NCBI RefSeq assembly: GCF_032191835.1 | Contig: NC_083226.1 | Span: forward strand, 103,664,001-103,728,000 | DNA: 64,000 nt | From: Heteronotia binoei | Taxonomy: Eukaryota | Direction of reading: 5' to 3' | In this document: positions 3,437 through 59,148 of the stretch, in pieces | Numbering within the stretch: position 1 is the first letter of the stretch | Layout: each line of letters opens with the position of its first letter | The notes under the pieces: generated by a model | Databases searched by the model: none | The model's input: only the letters and a program-made list of their open reading frames with translations | Told to the model about the DNA's origin: nothing | Made by a program: the position numbers and the translations under genes

Positions 3437-5881
3437 ATGGAAGGGAAGGTAAAAGAAAAAATTACTTTCAAAAGGTGCGTTCGCTGTGCAGCGAAAATAC
3501 CATCGACCGACGGGCATTCTCTTTGCCTTTTCTGCCTCGGGGAGTCCCACCGAACAGACTCGTGTGTGCACTGTAGCCAGTTCGGCAAACAAGCGAGAAA
3601 AAACCGCGCGGCAAGACTCAAAAGCCACTTGCTAGAGTCCTCTCTTCACCCGGTTATGGCGCAAGCCTCAGTCTCGCAGTCCTCTCCGTCTTCCCTACTT
3701 TCGAAGGGAGCGAATCCGCCGGTTGCTTCCGTGGCGCAGGCTCCCAGCAAGCATAAATCCAGCAAGCACCACAAGAAGTCTGACGACTCTAAGAAACGAC
3801 ACCGTACCGAGTTGACCCCGAAGGATTCTTCGACTCCGGATGACCCTTCGAACCCGAAGTCTCCCAAGAGACAGAAACTCAGCCGCAAGCCTCTCGAACC
3901 CGGCACCGTGATTCGACCTCTCGAACCCGTCGTCCTAATCAGGCCCGACACACCTCGACCGACTACGACCACCGTTCCCTCGAACCGGACTACTCCGGCT
4001 TCGAAATCCACTTCGACTCCGGCCATCACGCCACTGGAAATAGTGCGCATCAGCTCAAGATCTCCATCAGTGCACGAATCGCTGCCAGACCAAATCTTAG
4101 ATACTGAGTCCCCGAAGTCGATGAGAAGTCAACACCTCATTCCTCTCGAGGACCGCTTCCGTGAGATTCCTACGCTCCATCCTGTCACTACACCAGTGTT
4201 AACCAGGAACCCCTCGACTCCGAGAGAACTTCCTCGGCCCCGAGAATCCCCTCGACCCCGAGACTTCAGATCCCGAAGTGGACATAAGGACCATTACTAT
4301 TATTATTCTCCTTCAAGATCTCGATCTCCATCACCTCACAGATATTACAGATACCCTAGATCACCCTCTCCCGGCTTCTACAGACATCGCAACCGGGAGC
4401 GCTCTCGGTTCCGCGAGGATTCCAGATTCCGAGAGAGGCCTTACTACAAGGACCATTCCGACGAACGTGTCCGCCCTAGGTACCGAAACCCGTCTCCTCA
4501 TGAATACCAGAGGCCTAAACTACCTTCTCCTATCAATCCGACACAACCTCCTAGACCGGAGCCTCCTGCACCTGAAAAGGTCAACAAAACTCCAGACGCT
4601 GACATTAATGATTCAGAGACTGAACAATCTGTATCGTCCAATTCCTCAGTCTCAGACCTCCATTCTCCAGACTCCGACATAGTTAAGCCTGCAGATCTCT
4701 CTCCATCAGAAGGCCCTAAGTCGTACCTGGACCTTCTATCTAACATGGCTACTTCTCTTAATGTGAAGTTGACTACTGATGTACCAAGAGTCTCTGACGT
4801 GGTCTACGACCTGGTGCATGCAGATCTTCCTACAGGATCTTCCTTTCCCATGCTCCCATTCCACCTAGAGACTTTAAAAGAAGCATGGGACAAGCCAGCC
4901 TCCGTACCTTTGACGTCTAAGAGAGTTGAGGCACTTTACAAGGTACACCACCATATTCGTTACAAGAAATTCCGAATGGTCACACTCCAATCCATCCTTC
5001 CGTTGATCCCAGAACAAGCTTGGATGGCTTCAATAGATCTCCAGGATGCGTATTTCCACCTTTCCATCAGCCAACATCACAGGAGATTCCTCAGATTTGC
5101 CATAGGGGATCAACACTACCAATTCCGTGCTCTTCCTTTCGGCCTCTCTACAGCCCCGAGGGTGTTTATGAAGTGCATGGCGGTGGTAGTAGCAATGCTG
5201 AGACAACAACGCATCTCCATTTACCCATACATAGACGACTTGCTAGTCGTCTCCCACTCCAAGGAACAACTCCAGTCAGATGTCTCGACGACCCTGTCTC
5301 TCCTGGCCTCTTTGGGCCTCCAAGTCAACATCTCCAAATCGAATCTAACCCCTACTCAATCAATACAATTTATAGGGGCCCACCTCTCGACTGTGTCATG
5401 CAAGGCGTATCTACCAACAGACAGAGCACAACACATTATGTCTCTGGCCAGGGACATTATTCTACATCGTTCTCAGACAGCCTTCACCTTTCAGAGGATG
5501 CTGGGCCTCATGGCCACCACCACCTCGGTGCTTCAGTTTGCCAAACTGCACATGCGTCCTCTGCAGTTGTGGTTTGTGAGGACCTTCCATCCTCAGCGTC
5601 AACACCAGCTCACTATGCTCACGATCCCAGCTCACATCATCCCTTCTCTCGAATGGTGGACTGTGCGCCATCACCTTCTCAAGGGGATGTCCTTTGTCCA
5701 GACTCCTCCCTCGGTGATTGTCACCGCAGACGCTTCAAAGTGGGGATGGGGAGCCCACTTAGGACAGCTTACAGTTCAGGGCCAGTGGACGGAGTACGAG
5801 CGCTCCCTCCACATAAATTGTCTGGAGCTGATGGCAGTCCACAGGGCCCTACGATCTTTCCTGCCATCGCTTCACAACTAG
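3437..5881 (+). CDS. DIRS gag-like ORF1 fused in frame to RT-RNase H (deletion derivative, premature TAG)
   Basis: N-terminal Cys/His cluster (CVRC...CLFC...H...CVHC) and Ser/Arg/Pro-rich gag. RT motifs IDLQDAYFH, ALPFGLSTAPRVF and YPYIDDLL. RNase H motifs TADASKWGWG and HINCLELMAV. TAG at 5879-5881. Confidence 0.9.
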   Translation: MEGKVKEKITFKRCVRCAAKIPSTDGHSLCLFCLGESHRTDSCVHCSQFGKQARKNRAARLKSHLLESSLHPVMAQASVSQSSPSSLLSKGANPPVASVAQAPSKHKSSKHHKKSDDSKKRHRTELTPKDSSTPDDPSNPKSPKRQKLSRKPLEPGTVIRPLEPVVLIRPDTPRPTTTTVPSNRTTPASKSTSTPAITPLEIVRISSRSPSVHESLPDQILDTESPKSMRSQHLIPLEDRFREIPTLHPVTTPVLTRNPSTPRELPRPRESPRPRDFRSRSGHKDHYYYYSPSRSRSPSPHRYYRYPRSPSPGFYRHRNRERSRFREDSRFRERPYYKDHSDERVRPRYRNPSPHEYQRPKLPSPINPTQPPRPEPPAPEKVNKTPDADINDSETEQSVSSNSSVSDLHSPDSDIVKPADLSPSEGPKSYLDLLSNMATSLNVKLTTDVPRVSDVVYDLVHADLPTGSSFPMLPFHLETLKEAWDKPASVPLTSKRVEALYKVHHHIRYKKFRMVTLQSILPLIPEQAWMASIDLQDAYFHLSISQHHRRFLRFAIGDQHYQFRALPFGLSTAPRVFMKCMAVVVAMLRQQRISIYPYIDDLLVVSHSKEQLQSDVSTTLSLLASLGLQVNISKSNLTPTQSIQFIGAHLSTVSCKAYLPTDRAQHIMSLARDIILHRSQTAFTFQRMLGLMATTTSVLQFAKLHMRPLQLWFVRTFHPQRQHQLTMLTIPAHIIPSLEWWTVRHHLLKGMSFVQTPPSVIVTADASKWGWGAHLGQLTVQGQWTEYERSLHINCLELMAVHRALRSFLPSLHN

Positions 5882-6508
5882 CATGTCCAAGTCACATCGG
5901 ACAACATCGCTACTGTCTTCTACATAAACCGGCAGGGGGGCACTGCCTCCATCAGACTTTGCAAAAGAGCCCTAAGCCTGTGGCACTGGAGCATTGCCCA
6001 CGGCATTTTCCTGTCTGCTGTGCATCTACCCGGAACCCTAAATGTGCAAGCAGACACCCTCAGCCGATGTCCCATCAACGATCACGAGTGGTCCATCAAC
6101 CGCCGTTATCTCCTTCCGCTATTTCTGAGATTCAGCACACCGGACATAGATGCCTTTGCAACACAGGACAACGCTCAATGCCCGCGCTTCTTCACACGAG
6201 GCCAGCCGTCTCCACTGTCAGCAGGGGACGCCTTCCTACAACCCTGGAGCGGTCCAATGCTGTACATGTTTCCACCAGTTCCTCTCATTACGAGAGTGTT
6301 GCAAAAAATCATGACGGATGGTGCCAACTGCATCTTAGTGACTCCATGGTGGCCATGTCAACCTTGGTTCACCACTCTCCTCCTGCTGTCGCACGGCCTC
6401 TTTCACCGCTTCCCGCAAGCTCAGGACCTTCTCTCTCAACAGAACGGCAAGGTTCTTCATCACAACCCGACTCTCCTCCGCCTCACAGCATGGAGAATCA
6501 GTTCCTAA
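5882..6508 (+). pseudogene. DIRS RNase H C-terminus plus methyltransferase-like (MT) domain, same frame past the premature stop
   Basis: SDNIATVFYINRQGG, HLPGTLNVQADTLSR, DIDAFA, LYMFPPVPLI and LVTPWWP are typical DIRS RH/MT motifs. Same reading frame as 3437. Confidence 0.88.
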
Positions 6509-7524
6509 CCCTCTCTCCTGAGGTTCGTCATATCATCCTCAATGCTAGGAAGCCTGCTACCAGAAAATCCTATGCCTTCAAATGGAAACGTTTCTCCAAA
6601 TATGCTGAACTTCATTCCTTTCGACCTGAGCTTGCCAGCATCAACCAGATTTTGACCTACACCTTGACTCTCTCCAAAACTGGTCTATCTCACTCCTCCC
6701 TGAAGGTGCACCTCGCAGCTATCTCTGCATTCCATCCTTCCATCGATGGCTCCACTGTTTTTATTCACTCCGCAACCAAGGCATTCCTGAAGGGAATTCT
6801 TCACCTCCACCCTCCAATCCGTAAAATACAGCCTGCTTGGAGCCTATCCCTAGTCCTCAGTCAGTTAATGAAGCCACCGTTTGAACCCATGGCTTCCATT
6901 CCCTTACACCTTCTGACGTGGAAAACTGCCCTTCTAGTAGCCATTACTACTGGCAAGCGAGCCAGCGACATCTGCGCCTTCAGGGCTGATCCCCCGTACA
7001 CCATTTTTCACCATAACAAGGTAGTACTACGCCCTGATCCCGCTTTCTTGCCTAAGGTTGTCTCCCCCTTCCATCTAGGGAGGCCTTCCATCCTTCCTGC
7101 GTTCTTCCAAAACCCTACAGACACGGCCCAACGCACCCTACATCACCTCGACGTGCGTAGAGCTCTAGCCTTTTACATCGACAGAACTAAACAATTCCGA
7201 AAAGACAACAGACTTTTTGTATCTTATGCTACCCATAATCAGGGTACCAGAATCTCTACCCAGAGATTCTCTAAATGGATTACCTCCACTATATCTTTAT
7301 GCTTCGAATTGGCTAAACAGCCCTTACCTGAGCACTTGCGAGCTCACTCCACCAGAGCGGTCGCAATCTCAACAGCCTTCTGTAAGGGCGTTCCGATGGA
7401 GGACATTTGCGCTGCTGCAGTCTGGTCGTCCCCATCCACTTTCGCCTCGCACTACGCTCTCGACGTTCGTGCCCGGTGTGACACATCATTTGGGCAGGCC
7501 GTGCTGAGATCAATCTTCGACTGA
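6490..7524 (+). CDS. DIRS tyrosine recombinase (frame open from 5020; probable ATG at 6490)
   Basis: Catalytic R-H-R-H-Y motifs are present: GKRASD, HLDVRRAL, RAHSTR and FASHY. Confidence 0.93.
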   Translation: MENQFLTLSPEVRHIILNARKPATRKSYAFKWKRFSKYAELHSFRPELASINQILTYTLTLSKTGLSHSSLKVHLAAISAFHPSIDGSTVFIHSATKAFLKGILHLHPPIRKIQPAWSLSLVLSQLMKPPFEPMASIPLHLLTWKTALLVAITTGKRASDICAFRADPPYTIFHHNKVVLRPDPAFLPKVVSPFHLGRPSILPAFFQNPTDTAQRTLHHLDVRRALAFYIDRTKQFRKDNRLFVSYATHNQGTRISTQRFSKWITSTISLCFELAKQPLPEHLRAHSTRAVAISTAFCKGVPMEDICAAAVWSSPSTFASHYALDVRARCDTSFGQAVLRSIFD

Positions 7525-18926: not shown

Positions 18927-19200
18927 TAGAAGAAGACAACGACTGCAGATTTATACCCTGCCCTTCTCTCTGAATCCGAGACTTGGAGAGCTTACAATCT
19001 CATATGTCTTCTCCCTCCACAACAGACACCCTGTGAGGTTGGTGCGGCTGAGAGGGCTCTCACAGCAGCTGCCCTTTCAAGGACAACTCCTGCGATAGCT
19101 ATGGCTGACCCAAGGCCATTCCAGCAGGTGCAAGTGGATGAGGGGGGAATCAAACCCGGTTCTCCCAGATAAGAGTCCACACACTTAACTTCTGCACCAA
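18927..19200 (-). mobile_element. tRNA-derived CORE SINE (Squam3-like)
   Basis: A/B-box head (GGTGCAGAAGTTAAG...GGTTTGATTCC) and a simple-repeat tail. Related copies at 35180, 40095, 43650 and 60722. Confidence 0.8.
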
Positions 19201-20220
19201 ACAGGCTATACCTTGAATAACATTTTGTTAGTCTTAAAGGTGCCACTGGACTCAAACTTTGTTATGCTGCTTCAAGCCAATAGTTACCCACTTGAATTCA
19301 GTTTTGTTCAGTAACTAACAAGATAAAAGACTCCCTCTTGTGGGCAATTTAAACATTACAAAATCAGCTTTTAATTTGACAGTCAAATAACTGTCTAGTT
19401 TCTTAGCTTTGTTGCCTGTTGTTGAAGTAAGTGTCCAGTTTTTGCAATGAATTAAAAGAAATCTGTTTAGAAACAGTGTATAAGATTATATGGCACCCAT
19501 ATAGGATTATTATTCTCAATTAATCCCATAGCAAAATGCTTCCCAATATTCAGCAATGTAGATCAACAACCATTGACTCTGAGCCCAACAATACACCAGA
19601 TGGTTGTGGGCTCATTCCTGCCTTTGCATTCACACAGAACAGTCCAGGCAGGAGAGCCATTGCTTCTCTCACAGCCCCAATCAGCTTCCAGGCAGCACAG
19701 GAAGCAGAGAAACTTGGTACTTCCGTGTTAGTAAGGAACTAGTGCTATGTATTACTTCATACTGAAGCCTTTTGGGTGCTGTTTTCTTTTCCACATTTTG
19801 GTGCTGTAAGGCTCATTTCTAGAAATTCAAGCACAATACCAATGTAGCCAAAGGGCTATTTTAAAAGAATATTATAAAGAACCATTAAAATCACTTACTT
19901 AGAAGTACAGAATATTGCTTACTTACAAATAATTACCGTATTTTTCGCTCCATAAGACACACTTCCCCCCCTCCCCCCAAAATGGGGGGGAAAGTGTGTG
20001 CGTCTTATGGAGCGAATACTGCAAAAAAAAGAGTGCCTCCAAGCGTGCCTGCGCAAACGCCGCACGAGCGGTCGGAGCGGGGCCGGGACCCCTGTCTAGG
20101 GCTTTGCCGCCGCTGGAGCCAGGCTGGCCAGCCGCATTCAGGTCCTTATCCGCATTCAGGGGAGCTGCTGGACTCCTGCCTGCGTGGGGCTTGGGGAGGG
20201 AGCAGAGGGGCGCAACCTAC

Positions 20221-20466
20221 CAGCTGGGTGGGCAGGCAGGCGCGGCACAGGGCCTCGGAGATGCTGGTGCTGCTGGTGGTGGGGGGCCTGCTGTGGGCGC
20301 TAGCGCCGCTGGTGCTGCTGGGCGAGGTGGCCGAGGGCACGGCGGCCGAGGAGGTGCAGGGCGAGGCAGAGTACAGGGCTGAGTACTTGGGCGCGTGCAG
20401 GCTGCCGCCCCTGCCACCGTGGGCCATGGCGAAGGGCTGCTTGCTGGTGAGGGACATCATCATCAT
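20221..20466 (-). pseudogene. POU4F2: Captured POU4F2 (Brn3b)-like exon 1, copy A (82 open codons ending at a GTAGGT donor)
   Basis: MMMMSLTSKQPFAMAHGGRGGSLHAPKYSALYSASP...SEALCRACLPTQL, compared with recalled human MMMMSLNSKQAFSMPHGGSLHVEPKYSALHSTSP...SEAMRRACLPTPP. The phase-0 donor sits at the homologous position. Confidence 0.85.
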
Positions 20467-20599
20467 CGCGGAGGGGGCAGCATGCCAAAGTGGCCTCAGT
20501 CGCTGCTGCTTGCAGCTCGGGGGCGCCCACCTGCCTCGCTGCCACTGCCGCCTCCTGCCTGCGCGGGGCTTGGGGAGGGAGCAGAGGGGTGCAACCTAC

Positions 20600-20772
20600 A
20601 GGTGGGGTGGGCAGGCAGGCACGGCACAGGGCCTCGGAGGTGCTGGTGCTGCTGCTGGTGGGGTGCTGCTGCGGGCAGTAGCGCTGCTGCCGGCGCTGGT
20701 GCTGCTGGGCAAGCTGGCTGAGGGCACGGTGGCCGAGGAGGTGCAGGGCGAGGCGGAGTGCAGGGCCGAGTG
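20600..20772 (-). pseudogene. POU4F2: Captured POU4F2-like exon 1, copy B (5'-deleted, frameshifted)
   Basis: SALHSASPCTSS...SEALCRACLPTPP|gtaggt. Tandem duplicate of copy A with the same intron-start sequence. Confidence 0.8.
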
Positions 20773-22357
20773 GCCTTAGTCGCTGCTGCCTGCAGCCCGG
20801 GGGGCGCCCGCCTTCCTCGCCGCCGCCTCCTGCTGCTGCCGCTCTGCCTCCCGCCACTCTCCGCCGTCCGACTGGCCCCGCCGCCGCCTCGCCACTCAAT
20901 TTTGACTGGCCCCGCAGGCCCCCTCCCCGCCTCGTCGCCGCAGCCCCTAACTCTGTGGGAAAAGTGCGGCGCTTCGCCTTCCTCAAGTCCTCCTGGTCTG
21001 CCCCCGCCCTCCCCTGCAGCAACAGCAGCTCCTCCTCAGGTGCCCCTGCCTGCCCTGTCCAGTCCTGTCCCGCCGGCCTCAGCCCTCCTTGCCCTGGTGG
21101 GACAGAGCGCCCCTTATTGTTCTTGGTGCGGCTGGCGCTGCCACCCCCTCTTGGCTAGACAGGTGCCTCTGCCTGCCTCGCGGTGCACCAGAGAGAGACT
21201 GAGACCTCGCACCAAGTGGGCTCTGCGTGTCTTTCTCACTCCCTCTGTTGCCGGCTGCTTGGTGCCCATTGGATGGCTGCGAGGCTGGAGCTGACACGCG
21301 GAGGGAGACTCATGTGTCCTGCAGAGCGTGCGTGTGGCAGTGCCACCGGGGGCCCAGAGTGGGGCGGGGGAGGACTCGGGAGGAGGGGCCGAGGGAGAGC
21401 GGGGCCAGGCAGAGGAGAAGCGGAGCAGAGGTGCTGGGTAGCCTCAGGGGCTGCTGCTGCTGGTGCTGACAAAAGTGGTGAGCCTGAGCCCAATTGGGAG
21501 GAGGCCCTACCCCCCCCCCGCTTCAGGGTCATCAGAAAGCACGGAGAGGGGAGGGAAATGTCTGGTGGCATCTTAAAAGATTTACGGTAATAGATTTACA
21601 GCACAATCCTCTGCAGCCTGCTTTCCTGTCTATACTAGATTTATTTCAGTGGGCCAAAATGGATTCTGATCTACAAAATTTAGGATAACATCCTGTTGGT
21701 CTTCAAGGTGTCATAAGAGTCTCAGTGTTTTTTTTTTTGGCTCCCCCTTCCCCCCAAAAAAGATTGCACTTTTAGGCTGCTGTTGTGATGCATGTTGCTT
21801 TGAGAGTTAGCCCCTTCGAATGTGGTGTGATTTTATTATGAATACACATCCATAGAATTGCGCTGCTGTTGTAACACAAGAATTTGTGGATATGAGTTGA
21901 CTTTCATTAGAGACTATACTTGAACTTAAGCCAAAAAGCCCAGATGTTGTTTGTAAACTTTTACCATAACACATCTGCGTTTTTTAAAGGGTGCCCCAAG
22001 ACTTTTGTGTTTTGTTAGTAGCAGGCTTGTGAATTTGTTGTAGCTGTTCAGAGTCTTTTGATGTTTTAAAGACTGAAACATTTATTGTGGTAGAAGTTTT
22101 GTTTGCTGTTGGTTGGATATGTTTGGATAGATGCAGTAGTCTTCCATATTGAGTCAATTCATCTCATGTTGGGTTTTATTCTTTTCCTACTGTCTTAGAC
22201 TTTTCCCAGCATTGTTGTCTTTTCCAGTGAGTCTTGTTATCTAATAATGTGACCAACGCACTATAACTTTATTTTTTTCCCTGTTTTCCTCCTCTAAAAA
22301 CTAGGTGCGCCTTATGGTCAGGTGCGTCTTATGGAGTGAAAAATACAGTAATTCATG

Positions 22358-22510
22358 CTGATGATAGAGGTTTACAAAATTATGCATCGGATAGCGAAGG
22401 TAGAGAAAGAAGTATGTTTCTCTCTTTCTCATAATACAAGAACTCGTGGGTACTCAATGAAATGAGCAGTAGGCTTAGAACAGATAAGAGGAAATATTTC
22501 TTCACCCAAA
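22358..22510 (+). mobile_element. CR1 3' fragment
   Basis: Homologous to 1157-1310. Confidence 0.8.
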
Positions 22511-22769
22511 GACCCTGTTCGCACAGCATGTTGAGTCCATGTTAAACTGACCCGGTTCTGTTCCAATTAGCTTTGTTCTGGATATTATCGATCAGACTGC
22601 CATACTGCAATTTGAATCACTCCGCCTTTAAAACCGCGGTGAAACCATGACGGCAACATGCAGTTATTTGTTTTGTTTCCCCCACTATTATGCACATAAG
22701 TGCATAATACACATAGGTCAGAAAACATGCGCATACTGCTAAGTTGTAAAAAAAAATGACATCTGGATG

Positions 22770-24970
22770 TAGGGTGGCCAGACCGTCCCGGTCTCCCGGG
22801 ACTTTCCCGGTTCTGGCCCCCAATTCCCGGCTCCTGGGCTGGCTATACCGGGACCATTAGAAGTCCCGGTATAGCCAGCGGGGAGCCGGTGGGCCGCGCG
22901 CGCGGGCGGGGAAGGCGGGGAGTGAGGGAGCCAGCGTCCCTGCATGTGCGCACGGTGGTGTGCGCACGCGCAGGGACTCTGGCTCCCTCACTCCCCGCCT
23001 TCCCCGCCCGTGCGCGGGGCCCGGCGGCGGTGGCGGAGGCCGGGGAGAGGCCGCCGAGGGTCCCTGGAGGGCCTCCTGAGGCCCGGGGAGGCCGTGGAGA
23101 GGCCGCCGCGGGTCCCTGGAGGGCCTCCAGAGGCCCGGGGAGGCCACAGAGAGGCCGCCGCTGGTCCCTGGAGGCCCTCCAGAGGCCCGCGGAGGCCGCG
23201 GAGAGGCCGCCGCTGGTCCCTGGAGGCCCTCCAGAGGCCCGCGGAGGTCACGGAGAGGCCGCCGCGGGTCCCTGGAGGGCCTCCAGAGGCCGCGGAGAGG
23301 CCGCCGCGGGTCCCTGGGGGCCCTCCAGAGGCCCGCAGAGAGGCCGCCGCTGGTCCCTGGAGGGCCTCCAGAGGCCCGCGGAGGCCGCGGAGAGGCCGCC
23401 GCTGGTCCCTGGAGGGCCTCCAGAGGCCAGCGGAGGCCGCGGAGAGGCCGGCGCTGGTCCCTGGAGGGCCTCCAGAGGCCAGCGGAGGCCGCGGAGAGGC
23501 CGGCGCTGGTCCCTGGAGGGCCTCCAGAGACCAGCGGAGGCCGCGGAGAGGCCGGCGCTGGTCCCTGGAGGCCCTCCAGAGACCAGCGCCGGCCTCTCCG
23601 CCGCCTCCCCGGCCTCCGCAGCCGCCGCCAGCCCCGCCAGCCGCCCGGAGGAGAGGCAGCCACCCGCCCTGGAACAAGGTAAGCAGGGGGGGGCCGAAAG
23701 CGGGGGGGGCAGCNNNNNNNNNNNNNNNNNNNNNNNNNNNNNNNNNNNNNNNNNNNNNNNNNNNNNNNNNNNNNNNNNNNNNNNNNNNNNNNNNNNNNNN
23801 NNNNNNNNNNNNNNNNNNNNNNNNNNNNNNNNNNNNNNNNNNNNNNNNNNNNNNNNNNNNNNNNNNNNNNNNNNNNNNNNNNNNNNNNNNNNNNNNNNNN
23901 NNNNNNNNNNNNNNNNNNNNNNNNNNNNNNNNNNNNNNNNNNNNNNNNNNNNNNNNNNNNNNNNNNNNNNNNNNNNNNNNNNNNNNNNNNNNNNNNNNNN
24001 NNNNNNNNTCCCATCGTTGTGGGGCCCAGGGGGCTGGCGCAGCGGCACGCTGAAGCAGCCTGTCGCTCACTTCCGGGTTCCTGTCCTGCATCTCGACCTG
24101 TGTTATTAGTGACAGGCTGCTTCGGCGTGCCGCTGTGCCGGCCCCCTGGGTCCCACAACGATGGGACCGATGCCACAGGGACAGGCTCGAAACACTCTAT
24201 AACCCCTCAAAAGAACAGCAGTCTAGCTCGCTTCCCCCGAGCCCTGCCGCCATAAGCCTCAAGGGGGCTCATTTTGCGGCATCTCCCGGCGGGAGGGTGG
24301 CACCCGCACGGGACACATATCAAATGAAAGAGGGGGCGCAGGGCTATCAGAAACAGCCAGCGGAGGGAGTCGGGAGACCACCCCACTGGGGGATCCACAC
24401 CCCGAAAGTGATGAAGGTGGCGCAGATAGAGCCAACAGAGCAAACAGGACAAAATAAATAGGCTGCATTATGCAGCACAGTCTCACTGGAATCTCACTGG
24501 AATCTGACTTGCTTCTCAGCGTGGAACCCGTTCTCTCTAGTCTTCTCACTTTGAAAAAAGTAAAAAAAGAGTTTTATTTAACTTTATTTCCCCCTTTCCC
24601 TCTCTATAAATAATCTTGGTGTTTCCGGCGGTGATATTTGGGGGATTTTTGGGGACATCACAGGAAGTGCTGTGAAGTCACTTCCTGTTTCCGGCAGTGG
24701 CATTTGGGGAAAATGATGTCATTTTGGGGAAATGATGTCACAGGAAGTGATGTCACTTTCTGCTTCCGGCAGGTGGCGCGGGGGGATGATGTCACAGGAA
24801 GTGATGTCACTTCCTGTTTCTGGCAGGTGGCGCGCGCGGGGGGAAATGATGTCACAGGAAGTGATGTCACTTCCTGTTTCCGGCGGCGCGCAAGCTTTGC
24901 GCGCGCACACCCCTACCTCCCCCCCAAAAAAGGTGTCCCTGGCTGGCCTTCAGACATTATGGCCACCCTA
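22770..24970. mobile_element. Non-autonomous hAT (Blackjack-type TIR) element with GC-rich internal repeats; assembly gap at 23714-24008
   Basis: TIRs TAGGGTGGCCA / TGGCCACCCTA. Perfect 8-bp TSD TCTGGATG at 22762-22769 and 24971-24978. Confidence 0.9.
23050..23590. repeat. GC-rich minisatellite, unit of about 51 bp
   Basis: About ten variant units of GGTCCCTGGAGGGCCTCCAGAGGCCCGCGGAGGCCGCGGAGAGGCCGCCGCT. Confidence 0.9.
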
Positions 24971-51035: not shown

Positions 51036-51945
51036 TAGGGTTGCCAAGTCCAATTCAAGAAATATCTGGGGACTTTGGGGTGGAGCCAGGAGTAAGGGTG
51101 TGACAAGCATAATTGAACTCAAAAGGGAATTCTGGCCATCACATTTAAAGGGACCGCACACCTTTTAAATGCCTTCCCCCCACTGGAAATAATGAAGGGT
51201 AGGGGCACCTTCTTCTGGGGCTCAGAACTGAACCCCCTGGTCCAATCCTTTTGAGACATGGAGGGTTTTTTGAGGAGAGGCACTGGATACTATGCTGATA
51301 ATGTGGTGCCTCTATCTCAAAAATTAGCCCCCCTCCCAGAGCCCCAGATACCCATGGATCAATTCTCCATTATACCTTATTGAAATCATTCTTGTTTGTA
51401 ATAAACAATTTTTATTAGTAACATATGGTAGCAAAACTATATCTACATCTTATAAAGACTTAGAAATGAGAAATTCTTCTACCCCATATCTTACTTTTCC
51501 CCCACCCCTCCCCCCTTTACTTGACCCCTGCCAGTGTTATTTACTTAAAAAAAACAAATATTAAAGGTACCTTTAACTATTAAAAAACCAAAAATTATAT
51601 TTTGTTTTTTTTAAAAAGAAAAACTTAATCATTATCAAAAATTGTCCAATGTCCTTTTATTTTCCACTTTTTTTCTACGTATCTTCTGAACTTCTTCCAC
51701 TCCAACTTAAAAAGCTCCAAATTATAGTCTCTTAATTTTCTTGTTAATTTGTCCATTTCACTCCATGACATAATTTTTATAATCCAGTCCCATTTCTCTG
51801 GTATTTTTTCCTATGGAAATCATTCTCCATAGGGAATAGACATTTCCCTCCCGCCCCCCGCCCCCGCTTTCTGATGACCCTGAGGTGGGGGGAGGGCCTC
51901 CAAACTGGGGGATCTGCTGCCCCCACCTGGGGATTGGCAATCCTA
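51036..51945. mobile_element. hAT-Blackjack-type MITE containing a nested L1 3' end
   Basis: TIRs TAGGGTTGCC / GGCAATCCTA. Perfect 8-bp TSD TACATGAG (51028-35 and 51946-53). Confidence 0.88.
51393..51811 (-). mobile_element. 5'-truncated L1-like LINE 3' end
   Basis: ORF2 C-terminus KIPEKWDWIIKIMSWSEMDKLT...WKKF. 15-bp TSD TAT(T/G)GAAATCATTCT at 51378-92 and 51812-26. Confidence 0.8.
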
Positions 51946-52429
51946 TACATGAGGAATATCCTCCTCTAAACCTTTAAGAAATTGCTGTGCTTCCTCTGTA
52001 GTATGTATTATTGTCCAACTATTCCTATAAAAAATTACTCTAAAGGGAATGCCTCAACTGTATTGGATTCTTAAAGTCTTAATTTACTAGTTAAAAACTA
52101 AAATTGACACCTTTTGGACAGTGTCCAGATGAAGGTCGTTTAGAATCTGTATTATGTTCAACAAGAGGCTTTCCATTCCATATATTATGCAAAATTGCAT
52201 CCTTAGTTCTCAGCATAAAGTTTTTTTTTCACTTTTTTCTATCCCTACTGCTGCACTATGATCTGTACCCAAATACCCTTTTAGTACATCTTCCAAAAAG
52301 CCCACAATGTCTTTCCTTTCAATATTTTCTGGTAGGCCTTGAAATTTTAAATTATGTGTTAATTTTAAATTATCTACCAATTTAGCTTTGCCCTCCTCCT
52401 GTCTTGTGGTACATCTCCCATCCTCTAAG

Positions 52430-56696: not shown

Positions 56697-59148
56697 AGTG
56701 AAGCAGGAGCAAAGCTCGAAGGCATCCACGAAAAACTAGCCTCAATATTGAAAAATTTTATACAAATTACTTCCTACAAAAACAACAATACTTCTAATAA
56801 ATCCAATTACAAAATACCCCGAAACCAAAGTCCTTCCGTTCAACGGATTGACCAAAACATTACAATAAAATTCTTTCTCTAAATAGTTCTGAAACCAAAA
56901 AAAAATGTTCTAAAAGGGAGGCAGAAGTGGAAACAATAGGTTTCCGCTTCTGACTCCCTTTTAGAACCTATCGGTCAGTATGTGGATTTTTTTCTAAAAC
57001 CTTTTGTGGCGCTGTCACCTACCTACATTAAGGATACTACTGATTTTATAGCCAAAATAGGTCTTCAGGTGACAGAAAATGCAGTGTTGGTGTCTCTTGA
57101 CACCAACGCTTTGTATACCAACATTCCTCATGATGAGGTGAGACTTGTGTTGGAAAGCATCCTAGAATCTAGAGAGGAACGTCTGCCCCCTACTCATTTT
57201 CTACTCGAGCTTATTGATATAATTTTTGAGCACAATTTTTTTGTTTGTTTCAGGATCTATTTTATGTACAATTCAAAGGGGTCTCAATGGGAAGTCCCTT
57301 TTCTCCTAGTGTTGCATGTTTGTTTATGGACTATTTAGAGAAAGAATTTTATTGTAATGTTTTGGTCAGTCCATTTTTTTCTTCTGTAATATGGTTTTGT
57401 TGTTATATAGATGATGTCATGGCTATTTTTTCTGATGTTGACAGAGTGGATTCTTGGATAGATTGGATGAACAGTATCCATCCATCTATTCAGTTTAGTC
57501 ACAAGGCTGATAATCGATCTATGGCCTTTTTGGATACTGTTGTGTACAAATTACAGGGCAATACCTTAGCTGTTAGACCCTATAGGGAATCAATTGATAA
57601 ATCTCTTCCATTGAGATACGATAGTTGTCATCCCACCCATTTAAAAAAGAGCTTGCCTGTTTCATAGCTAATAAGGGCTAAATGTAACTCCATGAATATG
57701 GAAGACTTTGAGGGTGAAAAAACCCATGTTTGCACCAAATATGTTTCATGAGCATGTCCAAAACACATAATTAATTCTGCTTGTAAGCGTGTTAATAACA
57801 TGTCTAGAATAACAATGTTTTCTAAACACAATCGCTATGAAGAAAAGGCGGGGACAGTTAAAAATAGATTGACATGTGCCTTTCAATTTTCCTTTGGCCT
57901 ATCCTATCCAAAATGTTCTTTAAAAATTTTGGCTTGTAGTAAGAGACTTTCCTGGTTGTGAGAACTTTCCCAAAAATGGATATAGGAGGACTAGAAATTT
58001 ATCTGATTCTCTGGTTCGATCTGACTTTAAGAAAACACCTGTGTTTAAAGGGAATGCAGGACATCATAAATGCGGGGCTTGTTTCGCTTGCACATTATCT
58101 TTGGACTTGAAAGAGTTTATACATCCCACCAAAGGCTTTAAGGTCATTTTGAATGACATTACAACTTGTTCCACTAAGGCTTGTATTTATATTATTTTAT
58201 GTCCGTGTTTGAAAATTTATTGTGGCTGTACAAGATGCGCAGTTAGGACATGTGTCTTGGAACACAAGTATCATGTGAAGAATTTAATTTCTGAAGCTCC
58301 TCTCACAGAGCATTTTCGCCAATTTGTACATGATCCTAATGATTTGAGGTTTTTTGTTTTGGAAAAATTTCTTCTGCGGCTTCAGGGTAAAGTAGATATG
58401 CATAGATGGTTGCTCAGGCAAGAAATGCGCTGGATCTTTAAATTGAACTCCCTGATACCAAACAGACTGAATAATAATTGGGATCTTTCTTGTTTTTTGT
58501 AGTAACAATTTCATGTAAGTTCTAATGTAGATCTCATTGGATACTGTGTCTCTAACTTTAAGAATTAAAGAGTTATAGTATGTAACTTAAAGGGCTAAAG
58601 TAATGTTTAACACCTGTTCGTACATATATCATGTGAGGTGTGGCTGTGTGGTGCCATTTTAATCTGCAGAAAAAAAGTTCAGCTATTGCTATGAATGAAT
58701 TATTCAAGATCAGTGAAGGTTTGTATGTTTGCTTGTATGTTCTATTCAATTCTGTTCTTCAGCTTGTCAGTGATTTTTTGACATTATCTTTTGTGCAGCT
58801 TGTTAAAGCCTCAGGTGAAACAGGGCTATATGTGCTTCCCTGTTGCGAAATTGCACTGTGCTGCCTATGCAAAATAGTGTTGTACTGCTTTTCGTCTACA
58901 CACCTTCCTTGTTGAAAGGACTGTTGAAGTGTTGGACTCCTACTTCACGGCTTGTCAAGGATTTTCCCGGACTTCCACTACACAAAAAAATGAACTTTGG
59001 CATTGAACGTAAGGACTTTGGTTTTGGGGTATTTTGTAATTGGATTTATTACAAGTATTGCTGTTTTTGTAGGAAGTAATTTGTATAAAGTTTTCACTAT
59101 TGAGGCTGGTTTTTCGTGGATGCCTTCAGGCTTTGTTCCTGCTTCCTG
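56697..59148 (+). mobile_element. Penelope-like element (RT + GIY-YIG), frameshifted, with an inverted partial terminal repeat
   Basis: RT motifs SLDTNALYTNIP, GVSMGSPFSP and YIDD. Also CxxCxxC and a GIY-YIG-like IYIILCPCLKIYCG...EH. 56697-56850 is the reverse complement of about 58995-59148. Confidence 0.88.

Follow-up and report, generated by a model that had tools for sequence, protein, structure and literature searches.

The question raised by a 64,000-nucleotide stretch of the Heteronotia binoei genome (NC_083226.1, positions 103,664,001 to 103,728,000; hereafter the window, whose own coordinates are used throughout) is how the promoter and first exon of a class-IV POU factor gene, POU4F2, came to lie between two inverted ends of one transposon family. 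The unit concerned spans 19936-22348 and is bounded by terminal inverted repeats (TIRs) and TA dinucleotides. Judged from its sequence, the cargo of this unit is a DNA-level copy of the 5′ region of POU4F2 that is foreign to the locus. As to the way it arrived there, we favor, at about even chances, a one-off capture bounded by transposable element ends, under which the whole unit would be one non-autonomous TIR element with a TA target, a single-copy Pack-TIR. Contigs and reads of several sequencing runs were matched to the window: X1, X22, and X23 are RNA runs of organism A, and X3 comes from organism B. Organism A belongs to the same or a very close species, since its contigs differ from the window by 0-2 over 144-183 nt.

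The POU4F2-derived cargo

With a native exon 1 as query, tblastn finds the window with an E value of 9e-27. The coding part of this exon (copy 1, 20221-20466, minus strand), delimited by the open reading frame (ORF), tblastn, and codon comparison, lies within a minus-strand ORF at 20146-20466, starts with MMMM, and is 85% identical at the nucleotide level to the native locus L003; its 82 open codons carry no evidential weight of their own because the DNA is 72% GC. The native loci used for comparison (L003, L004, and L001) are all from other species. In L003, an intron of 445 nt separates exon 1 from an exon 2 beginning SNIFGGLDESLL (also quoted as SNIFGGLDESLLARAEALAAVD), and in L004 an exon-1 ORF is followed by an ORF with Pou and Homeodomain domains that falls in class-4 POU clusters. 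An exhaustive HMMER search returned only ORFs of vertebrate contigs that run from exon 1 into the intron, and a word-based search returned a whale protein with the Pou and Homeodomain Pfam domains, whose N terminus is 73% identical to the window ORF. The exon-1 peptide itself matched nothing in Pfam, and the N-terminal peptide string gave no match in a literature search. The assignment to paralogue 2, and not 1 or 3, is based on three features that we take to be hallmarks of that paralogue: the initial MMMM, a spacer rich in Ser, and, in L003, a His run within exon 2.

The similarity to the native gene extends to both sides of the exon, and the window is colinear with L003 from intron through promoter over 20102-21336. 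The GTAGGT donor at 20220-20215 is in phase 0, as in L003, and is followed by intron-1-derived DNA (20031-20220, minus strand). In local alignment, homology to the native intron is demonstrated for 20102-20220, that is, for at least 119 nt of intron 1, and the intron-derived portion probably extends over ~190 nt to 20031, the remaining 20031-20101 being GC- and CpG-rich and the segment 20031-20220 having a CpG observed/expected ratio (o/e) of 0.81. Upstream of the exon come a 5′ untranslated region (5′UTR)-derived segment (20467-20551, minus strand), delimited by repeat analysis and ending at a tandem-duplication junction, then a second tandem copy (20552-20840, minus strand; repeat analysis and alignment), and finally 5′UTR- and promoter-derived DNA (20841-21336, minus strand), which blastn and local alignment show to be colinear with L003. 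Colinearity of the 5′UTR starts at 20847, and a conserved promoter block at 21105-21336, ~870 bp upstream, matches L003 1458-1689 with a local alignment score of 133. The preliminary description of this locus, made from the sequence alone, had read the minus-strand ORF correctly as a POU4F2-type exon 1 foreign to the locus and ending at the homologous phase-0 donor. It had allowed only about 45 nt of intron, which is too short, and had seen exon 1 as the cargo, which is right as far as it goes and leaves out the 5′UTR, the promoter block to 21336, and the tandem duplication.

Several origins of this DNA can be set aside. A tblastn search for native exon 2, which encodes the POU domain and homeodomain (exon-2 ORF of L004 as query), found nothing in the 64 kb (best E value, 1.6), and the sequence is therefore a gene fragment and not the POU4F2 locus, as also indicated by its duplicated and decayed state. 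The simultaneous presence of promoter, 5′UTR, exon 1, and intron start means that the copy was made at the DNA level, as had been proposed, and a processed retrocopy is ruled out by the intron-1 and promoter DNA together with the lack of exon 2 and of a polyA tract at the 3′ side of the fragment. Helitron or LINE (long interspersed nuclear element) transduction was rejected by inspection only, since neither a CTRR end with a hairpin nor a polyA on the correct side is seen. In summary of the comparison with native POU4F2 (Brn-3b), the fragment shares the exon-1 pattern MMMMSL..KQPFAM...KYSAL..SASP...SEA..RACLPT and a donor, intron start, 5′UTR, and promoter block colinear with L003 and L004; it differs by the absence of the POU-IV box remainder, the POU-specific domain, and the homeodomain, by its duplicated exon and mutated residues, and by a lower CpG o/e.

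The marks of age are numerous. The exon region was duplicated in tandem, 20173-20551 (~380 bp) being repeated at 20552-20840 with a 7-nt CTCCTGC microhomology at the junction. Copy 2 comprises an intron start (20552-20599), an exon part (20600 to ~20771), and a UTR part reaching 20840; it has its own donor at 20599-20594 (CLPTPP followed by GTAGGT) and lacks ~100 nt, the ATG among them. The two copies differ by 13% over 284 aligned sites (22 transitions and 15 transversions; Kimura two-parameter distance, 0.144), so that the duplication is old and the capture at least as old. The CpG o/e of the GC-rich block is 0.56, as compared with 0.79-0.89 in the native L003 exon-1/upstream region and 0.05-0.2 in the flanks. 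Furthermore, the ratio of nonsynonymous to synonymous substitution rates between copy 1 and L003 is 0.93 over 80 codons, and copy 1 carries changes at residues that are invariant in all native sequences: N7T, H32Y (KYSALH to Y), AMRR to ALCR (EAMRRAC to EALCRAC), and PP to QL.

Transcription of the cargo is close to nil. In organism A, RNA depth over 20088-21375 is 0 in X1, 0 in X22, and ~5 reads in X23, and no splice joint from the donors at 20220 or 20599 is listed in its RNA data. All five X23 reads covering position 20247 carry a G (Arg CGC) where the window has an A (Cys TGC). Apart from this site the reads match copy 1, one of them at least without any further difference; the contig of organism B also has G. 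This G could come from an allele, a close paralogue, or the native mRNA. In organism B, the exon region is covered by a single contig without excess depth. Taken as a whole, the sequence speaks for an old, neutrally drifting, and dead gene fragment that is neither functioning nor spreading.

Ends and interior of the unit

The unit runs from C19936 to G22348, and the inverted repeat bounding it has arms of 32 nt at 19931-19962 and 22322-22353 that are 91% complementary, the three mismatches all being CpG-type transitions. A TA dinucleotide, read from the sequence as a candidate target-site duplication, stands outside the left end (19934-19935), and another stands outside the right end (22349-22350). 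The window contains three copies of a 17-nt core from the inverted repeat (0.02 expected), none of them away from the two ends of the unit; the subterminal motif CCATAAGRCGCACC has the same distribution. The termini read C(C/T)GTATTTTTC and thus, with the TA flanks, combine a TA target with a CAGT-like terminus as in Tc1/mariner elements. With C(C/T)GT at the termini and TA beside them, the unit can be placed in the Tc1/mariner superfamily and in no finer clade, whereas the preliminary description had called it Tc2/pogo-like; the window holds no autonomous partner. In a Pfam search, no family matched the ORFs within the unit, and no transposase was found. The bounds of ~25-bp TIRs and TA, and the missing transposase, had been recognized in the preliminary description and are borne out, with somewhat longer arms.

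The left end is itself a complete foldback miniature inverted-repeat transposable element (MITE) of 86 nt (19936-20021), recognized by its inverted repeat and its folding. Its outer arm (19936-19962) is the left TIR, and an inverted inner copy lies at 19998-20021; as single-stranded DNA, it folds with −29.1 kcal/mol (z −10.2). Inward of it, at 20022-20030, come CA and an A8 run, so that its inner flank is CA and not TA. The right end (22146-22348) is an arm of the same MITE family, delimited by read-data depth, contig pieces, and differences from the consensus, which holds the right TIR (22322-22348) and subterminal CCATAAGRCGCACC motifs at 22304-22334. It is multi-copy from ~22146 in organism A and from ~22270 in organism B. 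Neither a left TIR nor a foldback was found within 22146-22348, and the interpretation of this arm as a second foldback MITE was rejected, self-complementarity being weak and the folding z only −1.9. The POU4F2-derived DNA hence stands between inverted ends of the same family, at 19936-20021 and 22146-22348, which is the arrangement of a Pack-TIR.

The MITE family is multi-copy in the sequencing data of organism A. In run X3 of organism B, the summed contig k-mer depth reaches 450,000-750,000 over bins 19927-20087 and 22181-22341 (~449,000 for bin 19927-20087 alone), and units lacking a left TIR are common there, as are adjacent and tandem-like ones, with joints such as 22348 to 22301 and 22351 to 19968. 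The family may be satellite-like in organism B. Joints leading from 20017/20028 to 22273/22291 through 10-12 other letters occur in both organisms, in a single contig of organism B and, for organism A, in a contig plus two reads that link 20028 to 22291 through 12 other letters; a short form with both arms in the order of the window therefore exists. A 48-amino-acid ORF of the MITE gave no match as a protein query in libraries without the ORFs of this genome. A scan with the TIR pattern gave 0 matches in metagenome contigs, one in viral contigs, and 10 in prokaryotic contigs, which was judged to be chance level.

Between the cargo and the right arm, the unit is heterogeneous. The preliminary description had called the interior CpG-rich; this holds for 20031 to ~21455, to which the CpG-rich part is confined, and fails for the AT-rich DNA further right. 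A GC-rich tail (21337-21475, GC 0.74, no strand assigned) is possibly more distal POU4F2 upstream DNA, and the comparison of 21337-22300 with the distal part of L003 gave no homology above shuffled controls. Next to it lies a plus-strand fragment of a dispersed repeat, here called R (21476-21568), which ends abruptly at 21568; it is cut off there, as a loose end at this position shows the family continuing. Repeat R, which includes GGGTCATCAGAAAGC and GGGAAATGTCT, is multi-copy and transcribed in organism A, and its second copy in the window is at 51838-51950 on the minus strand. The remaining ~580 nt (21569-22145), defined by composition and with no strand assigned, have 37% GC and represent local DNA or else a second piece of cargo; in organism A, only one locus-specific RNA contig (21814-22278) covers them.

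A proposed single capture and its rivals

If the unit is a single element, the interior of a Tc1/mariner-type element would have been replaced or expanded once by foreign DNA. The main cargo would then amount to ~1.4 kb of POU4F2, made of ~190 nt of intron 1, exon 1, the 5′UTR, and ~0.9-1 kb of promoter, with the fragment of repeat R and the AT-rich piece as its neighbors. A plausible start is breakage at the hairpin-forming MITE or excision of it, after which repair synthesis may have switched template into the GC-rich CpG island of POU4F2, by the gap-filling route put forward for Pack-TIRs present in one copy; alternatively, two family ends at the source locus could have mobilized everything between them. 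The later events, as read from the sequence, are the 380-bp tandem duplication at the 7-nt microhomology, the loss of ~100 nt from copy 2, CpG decay, and neutral drift of the coding part.

This single-element reading is supported by the arrangement of the parts. The two family loci, the only ones in the 64 kb, flank the cargo with outward-facing termini, the GC-rich block begins at most 10 nt from the inner end of the MITE, the left MITE is bordered on its inner side by CA and not TA, and the right arm has neither a left TIR nor a foldback of its own. The joints from 20017/20028 to 22273/22291 also count in its favor. Other observations weigh against it. The left TIR sits within a self-sufficient 86-nt foldback MITE, possibly an independent insertion, and a half unit like the right arm need not pair with the end at 19936 because such units are common in organism B. 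The 2-bp TA is weak evidence, as TA is expected beside any end of this MITE family whether or not the ends are paired. The AT-rich 21569-22145 looks as local ancestral DNA would: its composition is that of the outside flanks, it is apparently single-copy in organism A, and in organism B it is covered in patches, as the left flank is. Besides, the joints across the interior occur at low counts and with short sides of 20-43 nt, and no second copy, empty site, or junction-bridging read was obtained.

Part of this evidence fits a link of the cargo to the left foldback MITE only, which we regard as unlikely though far from negligible. Break repair would have copied the POU4F2 block in beside a fragile hairpin MITE, or else a MITE residing in POU4F2 intron 1 would have skipped its own end and taken the adjoining DNA with it; in both versions, 21569-22145 would be local DNA and the right arm an unrelated neighbor from the same abundant family. 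The GC-rich block that abuts the MITE within 10 nt, the strong hairpin (z −10.2), the AT-rich part with the GC content of the flanks, and a breakpoint at 21568, where repeat R is cut, all agree with this. Against it, an outward-facing end of the same family would lie 780 bp past the cargo by chance, for which two family loci in 64 kb give roughly 4%. Moreover, the candidate for a cryptic right end, a third TIR at 21563-21587 (TACGGTA and TA), was rejected as the true right end, its score being no better than 176 of 2544 background tiles. It is distinctly unlikely, in our view, that the transposons had no role at all, the cargo being a small segmental duplication of the POU4F2 5′ region and the two MITE copies having inserted independently. 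The extreme abundance of the family in relatives, where adjacent and nested units are frequent, the completeness of the left MITE by itself, and the failure of the searches to find a second copy of the composite are all compatible with such a coincidence, which has to face the agreement of cargo and MITE edges within 10 nt, the bracketing of the cargo in the right orientation by the sole two family loci of 64 kb, the CA inner flank of the left MITE, and the right unit without a left TIR.

The preliminary description had gone further than a single capture and suggested a Pack-Tc1/mariner family spreading the exon. An active or once-amplifying family of this kind, with POU4F2 exon 1 at many loci, is very unlikely. 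The structure does suit a TIR-cargo-TIR unit with TA flanks, and the five G-bearing reads of X23 at 20247 could stem from another copy (or allele). However, another copy of the cargo turned up neither in the window nor in two protein-level searches covering 5.8 billion ORFs, in libraries apparently without this genome, where ORF queries of 106 and 265 amino acids matched only native POU4F2 exon-1 contigs of other species; the copy is old, with 13% between its internal duplicates, as well as decayed and nearly silent, and the exon region of organism B is a single contig whose depth is not in excess. The converse suspicion, that POU4F2-like reads were chimerically joined into an unrelated repeat-rich region during assembly, seems to us extremely unlikely. 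It draws on the facts that no read or contig obtained bridges 19936, 20031, 21568, or 22348, that the junctions lie at repeats, and that an assembly gap (23714-24008) is only 1.4 kb away. On the other hand, there are no Ns within the unit, copy 1 is matched by reads of another individual, and the cargo, being duplicated, CpG-decayed, and mutated at invariant residues, differs from the native gene, which indicates that a diverged copy is really present in the genome.

Surrounding repeats and related captures

The window is otherwise rich in repeats. Directly right of the unit, a 3′ LINE-like fragment (22361-22511) is 81% identical to 1157-1300 and, from loose ends, is 5′-truncated at 22361 relative to the expressed family. 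To the left, 18961-19282 is an extremely high-copy and highly transcribed repeat, with a depth of ~390,000 in X1 contigs and of hundreds to thousands in raw RNA reads; its many backward joints (e.g., 19175 to 19097) suggest that it is internally tandem or variable, and it is probably a SINE (short interspersed nuclear element). A large retroelement occupies 3437-7524 with overlapping ORFs of 814 and 834 amino acids, the first with an RVT_1 match (E value, 4e-23) and the second with no Pfam match, and presumably is DIRS-like by its look. A GC-rich minisatellite at 23033-23673 (52-bp unit, ~11 copies, 87% identity, higher-order periods of 189-293) heads toward the assembly gap at 23714-24008 and produces long artefactual ORFs on both strands, and 24726-24884 holds 2.8 copies of a 54-bp tandem repeat with palindromic GATGTCAC/GTGACATC motifs. 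Lastly, 57245-57664 is a weak reverse-transcriptase fragment (RVT_1; E value, 1e-5, below the gathering score) with more ORFs alongside at 56982-58502, another decayed retroelement.

The catalogue of Tan et al. (2021, PMC8277862) lists captures of host DNA by TIR elements across 100 animal genomes, of which 81 are vertebrate, including multicopy Pack-TIRs in frogs and alligators. The impression of the preliminary description that nothing of this kind was on record for a reptile therefore does not stand, given the alligators, and a squamate case would be a new member of the catalogue. The unit resembles the single-copy Pack-TIRs of that study in having host DNA between the ends of one TIR family without a transposase, and a fragmentary, GC-rich, single-copy cargo for which gap filling or template switching fits better than repeated transposition. 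It departs from them in its interior, a mosaic of the POU4F2 block, repeat R, and the AT-rich piece, and in its ends, a complete foldback MITE on the left and a partial unit on the right. Drosophila Ssk-FB4 (PMC8277862) likewise has ends made of short subterminal repeats that form hairpins and are prone to breakage and template switching, but it is young, multicopy, expressed, and selected, whereas the present copy has aged and decayed, seems to be unique, and is nearly silent. With plant Pack-MULEs, the unit shares the promoter and first exon taken at the DNA level from the GC-rich 5′ region of a gene and placed between TIRs, as well as an interior that may mix origins; the TA target, in place of the 9-bp Mutator duplication, sets it in a different superfamily, and no amplification, transcription, or chimeric RNA is seen here.

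Considered alone, the locus is a dead fragment without sign of function, whose value would be higher only if captures were unusually frequent in the lineage. It is distinctly doubtful that it represents one case of a lineage-wide uptake of GC-rich promoter and first-exon fragments by MITEs (TA-targeting and hAT); if this were true, hairpin-forming MITEs would be template-switching hot spots into the CpG islands of a vertebrate. If the single-element reading holds, the locus would be a clear squamate case of DNA-level capture by a MITE of the promoter and first exon of a developmental transcription factor, with a dated internal history (capture, tandem duplication, deletion, and decay) that helps explain the origin of single-copy Pack-TIRs.

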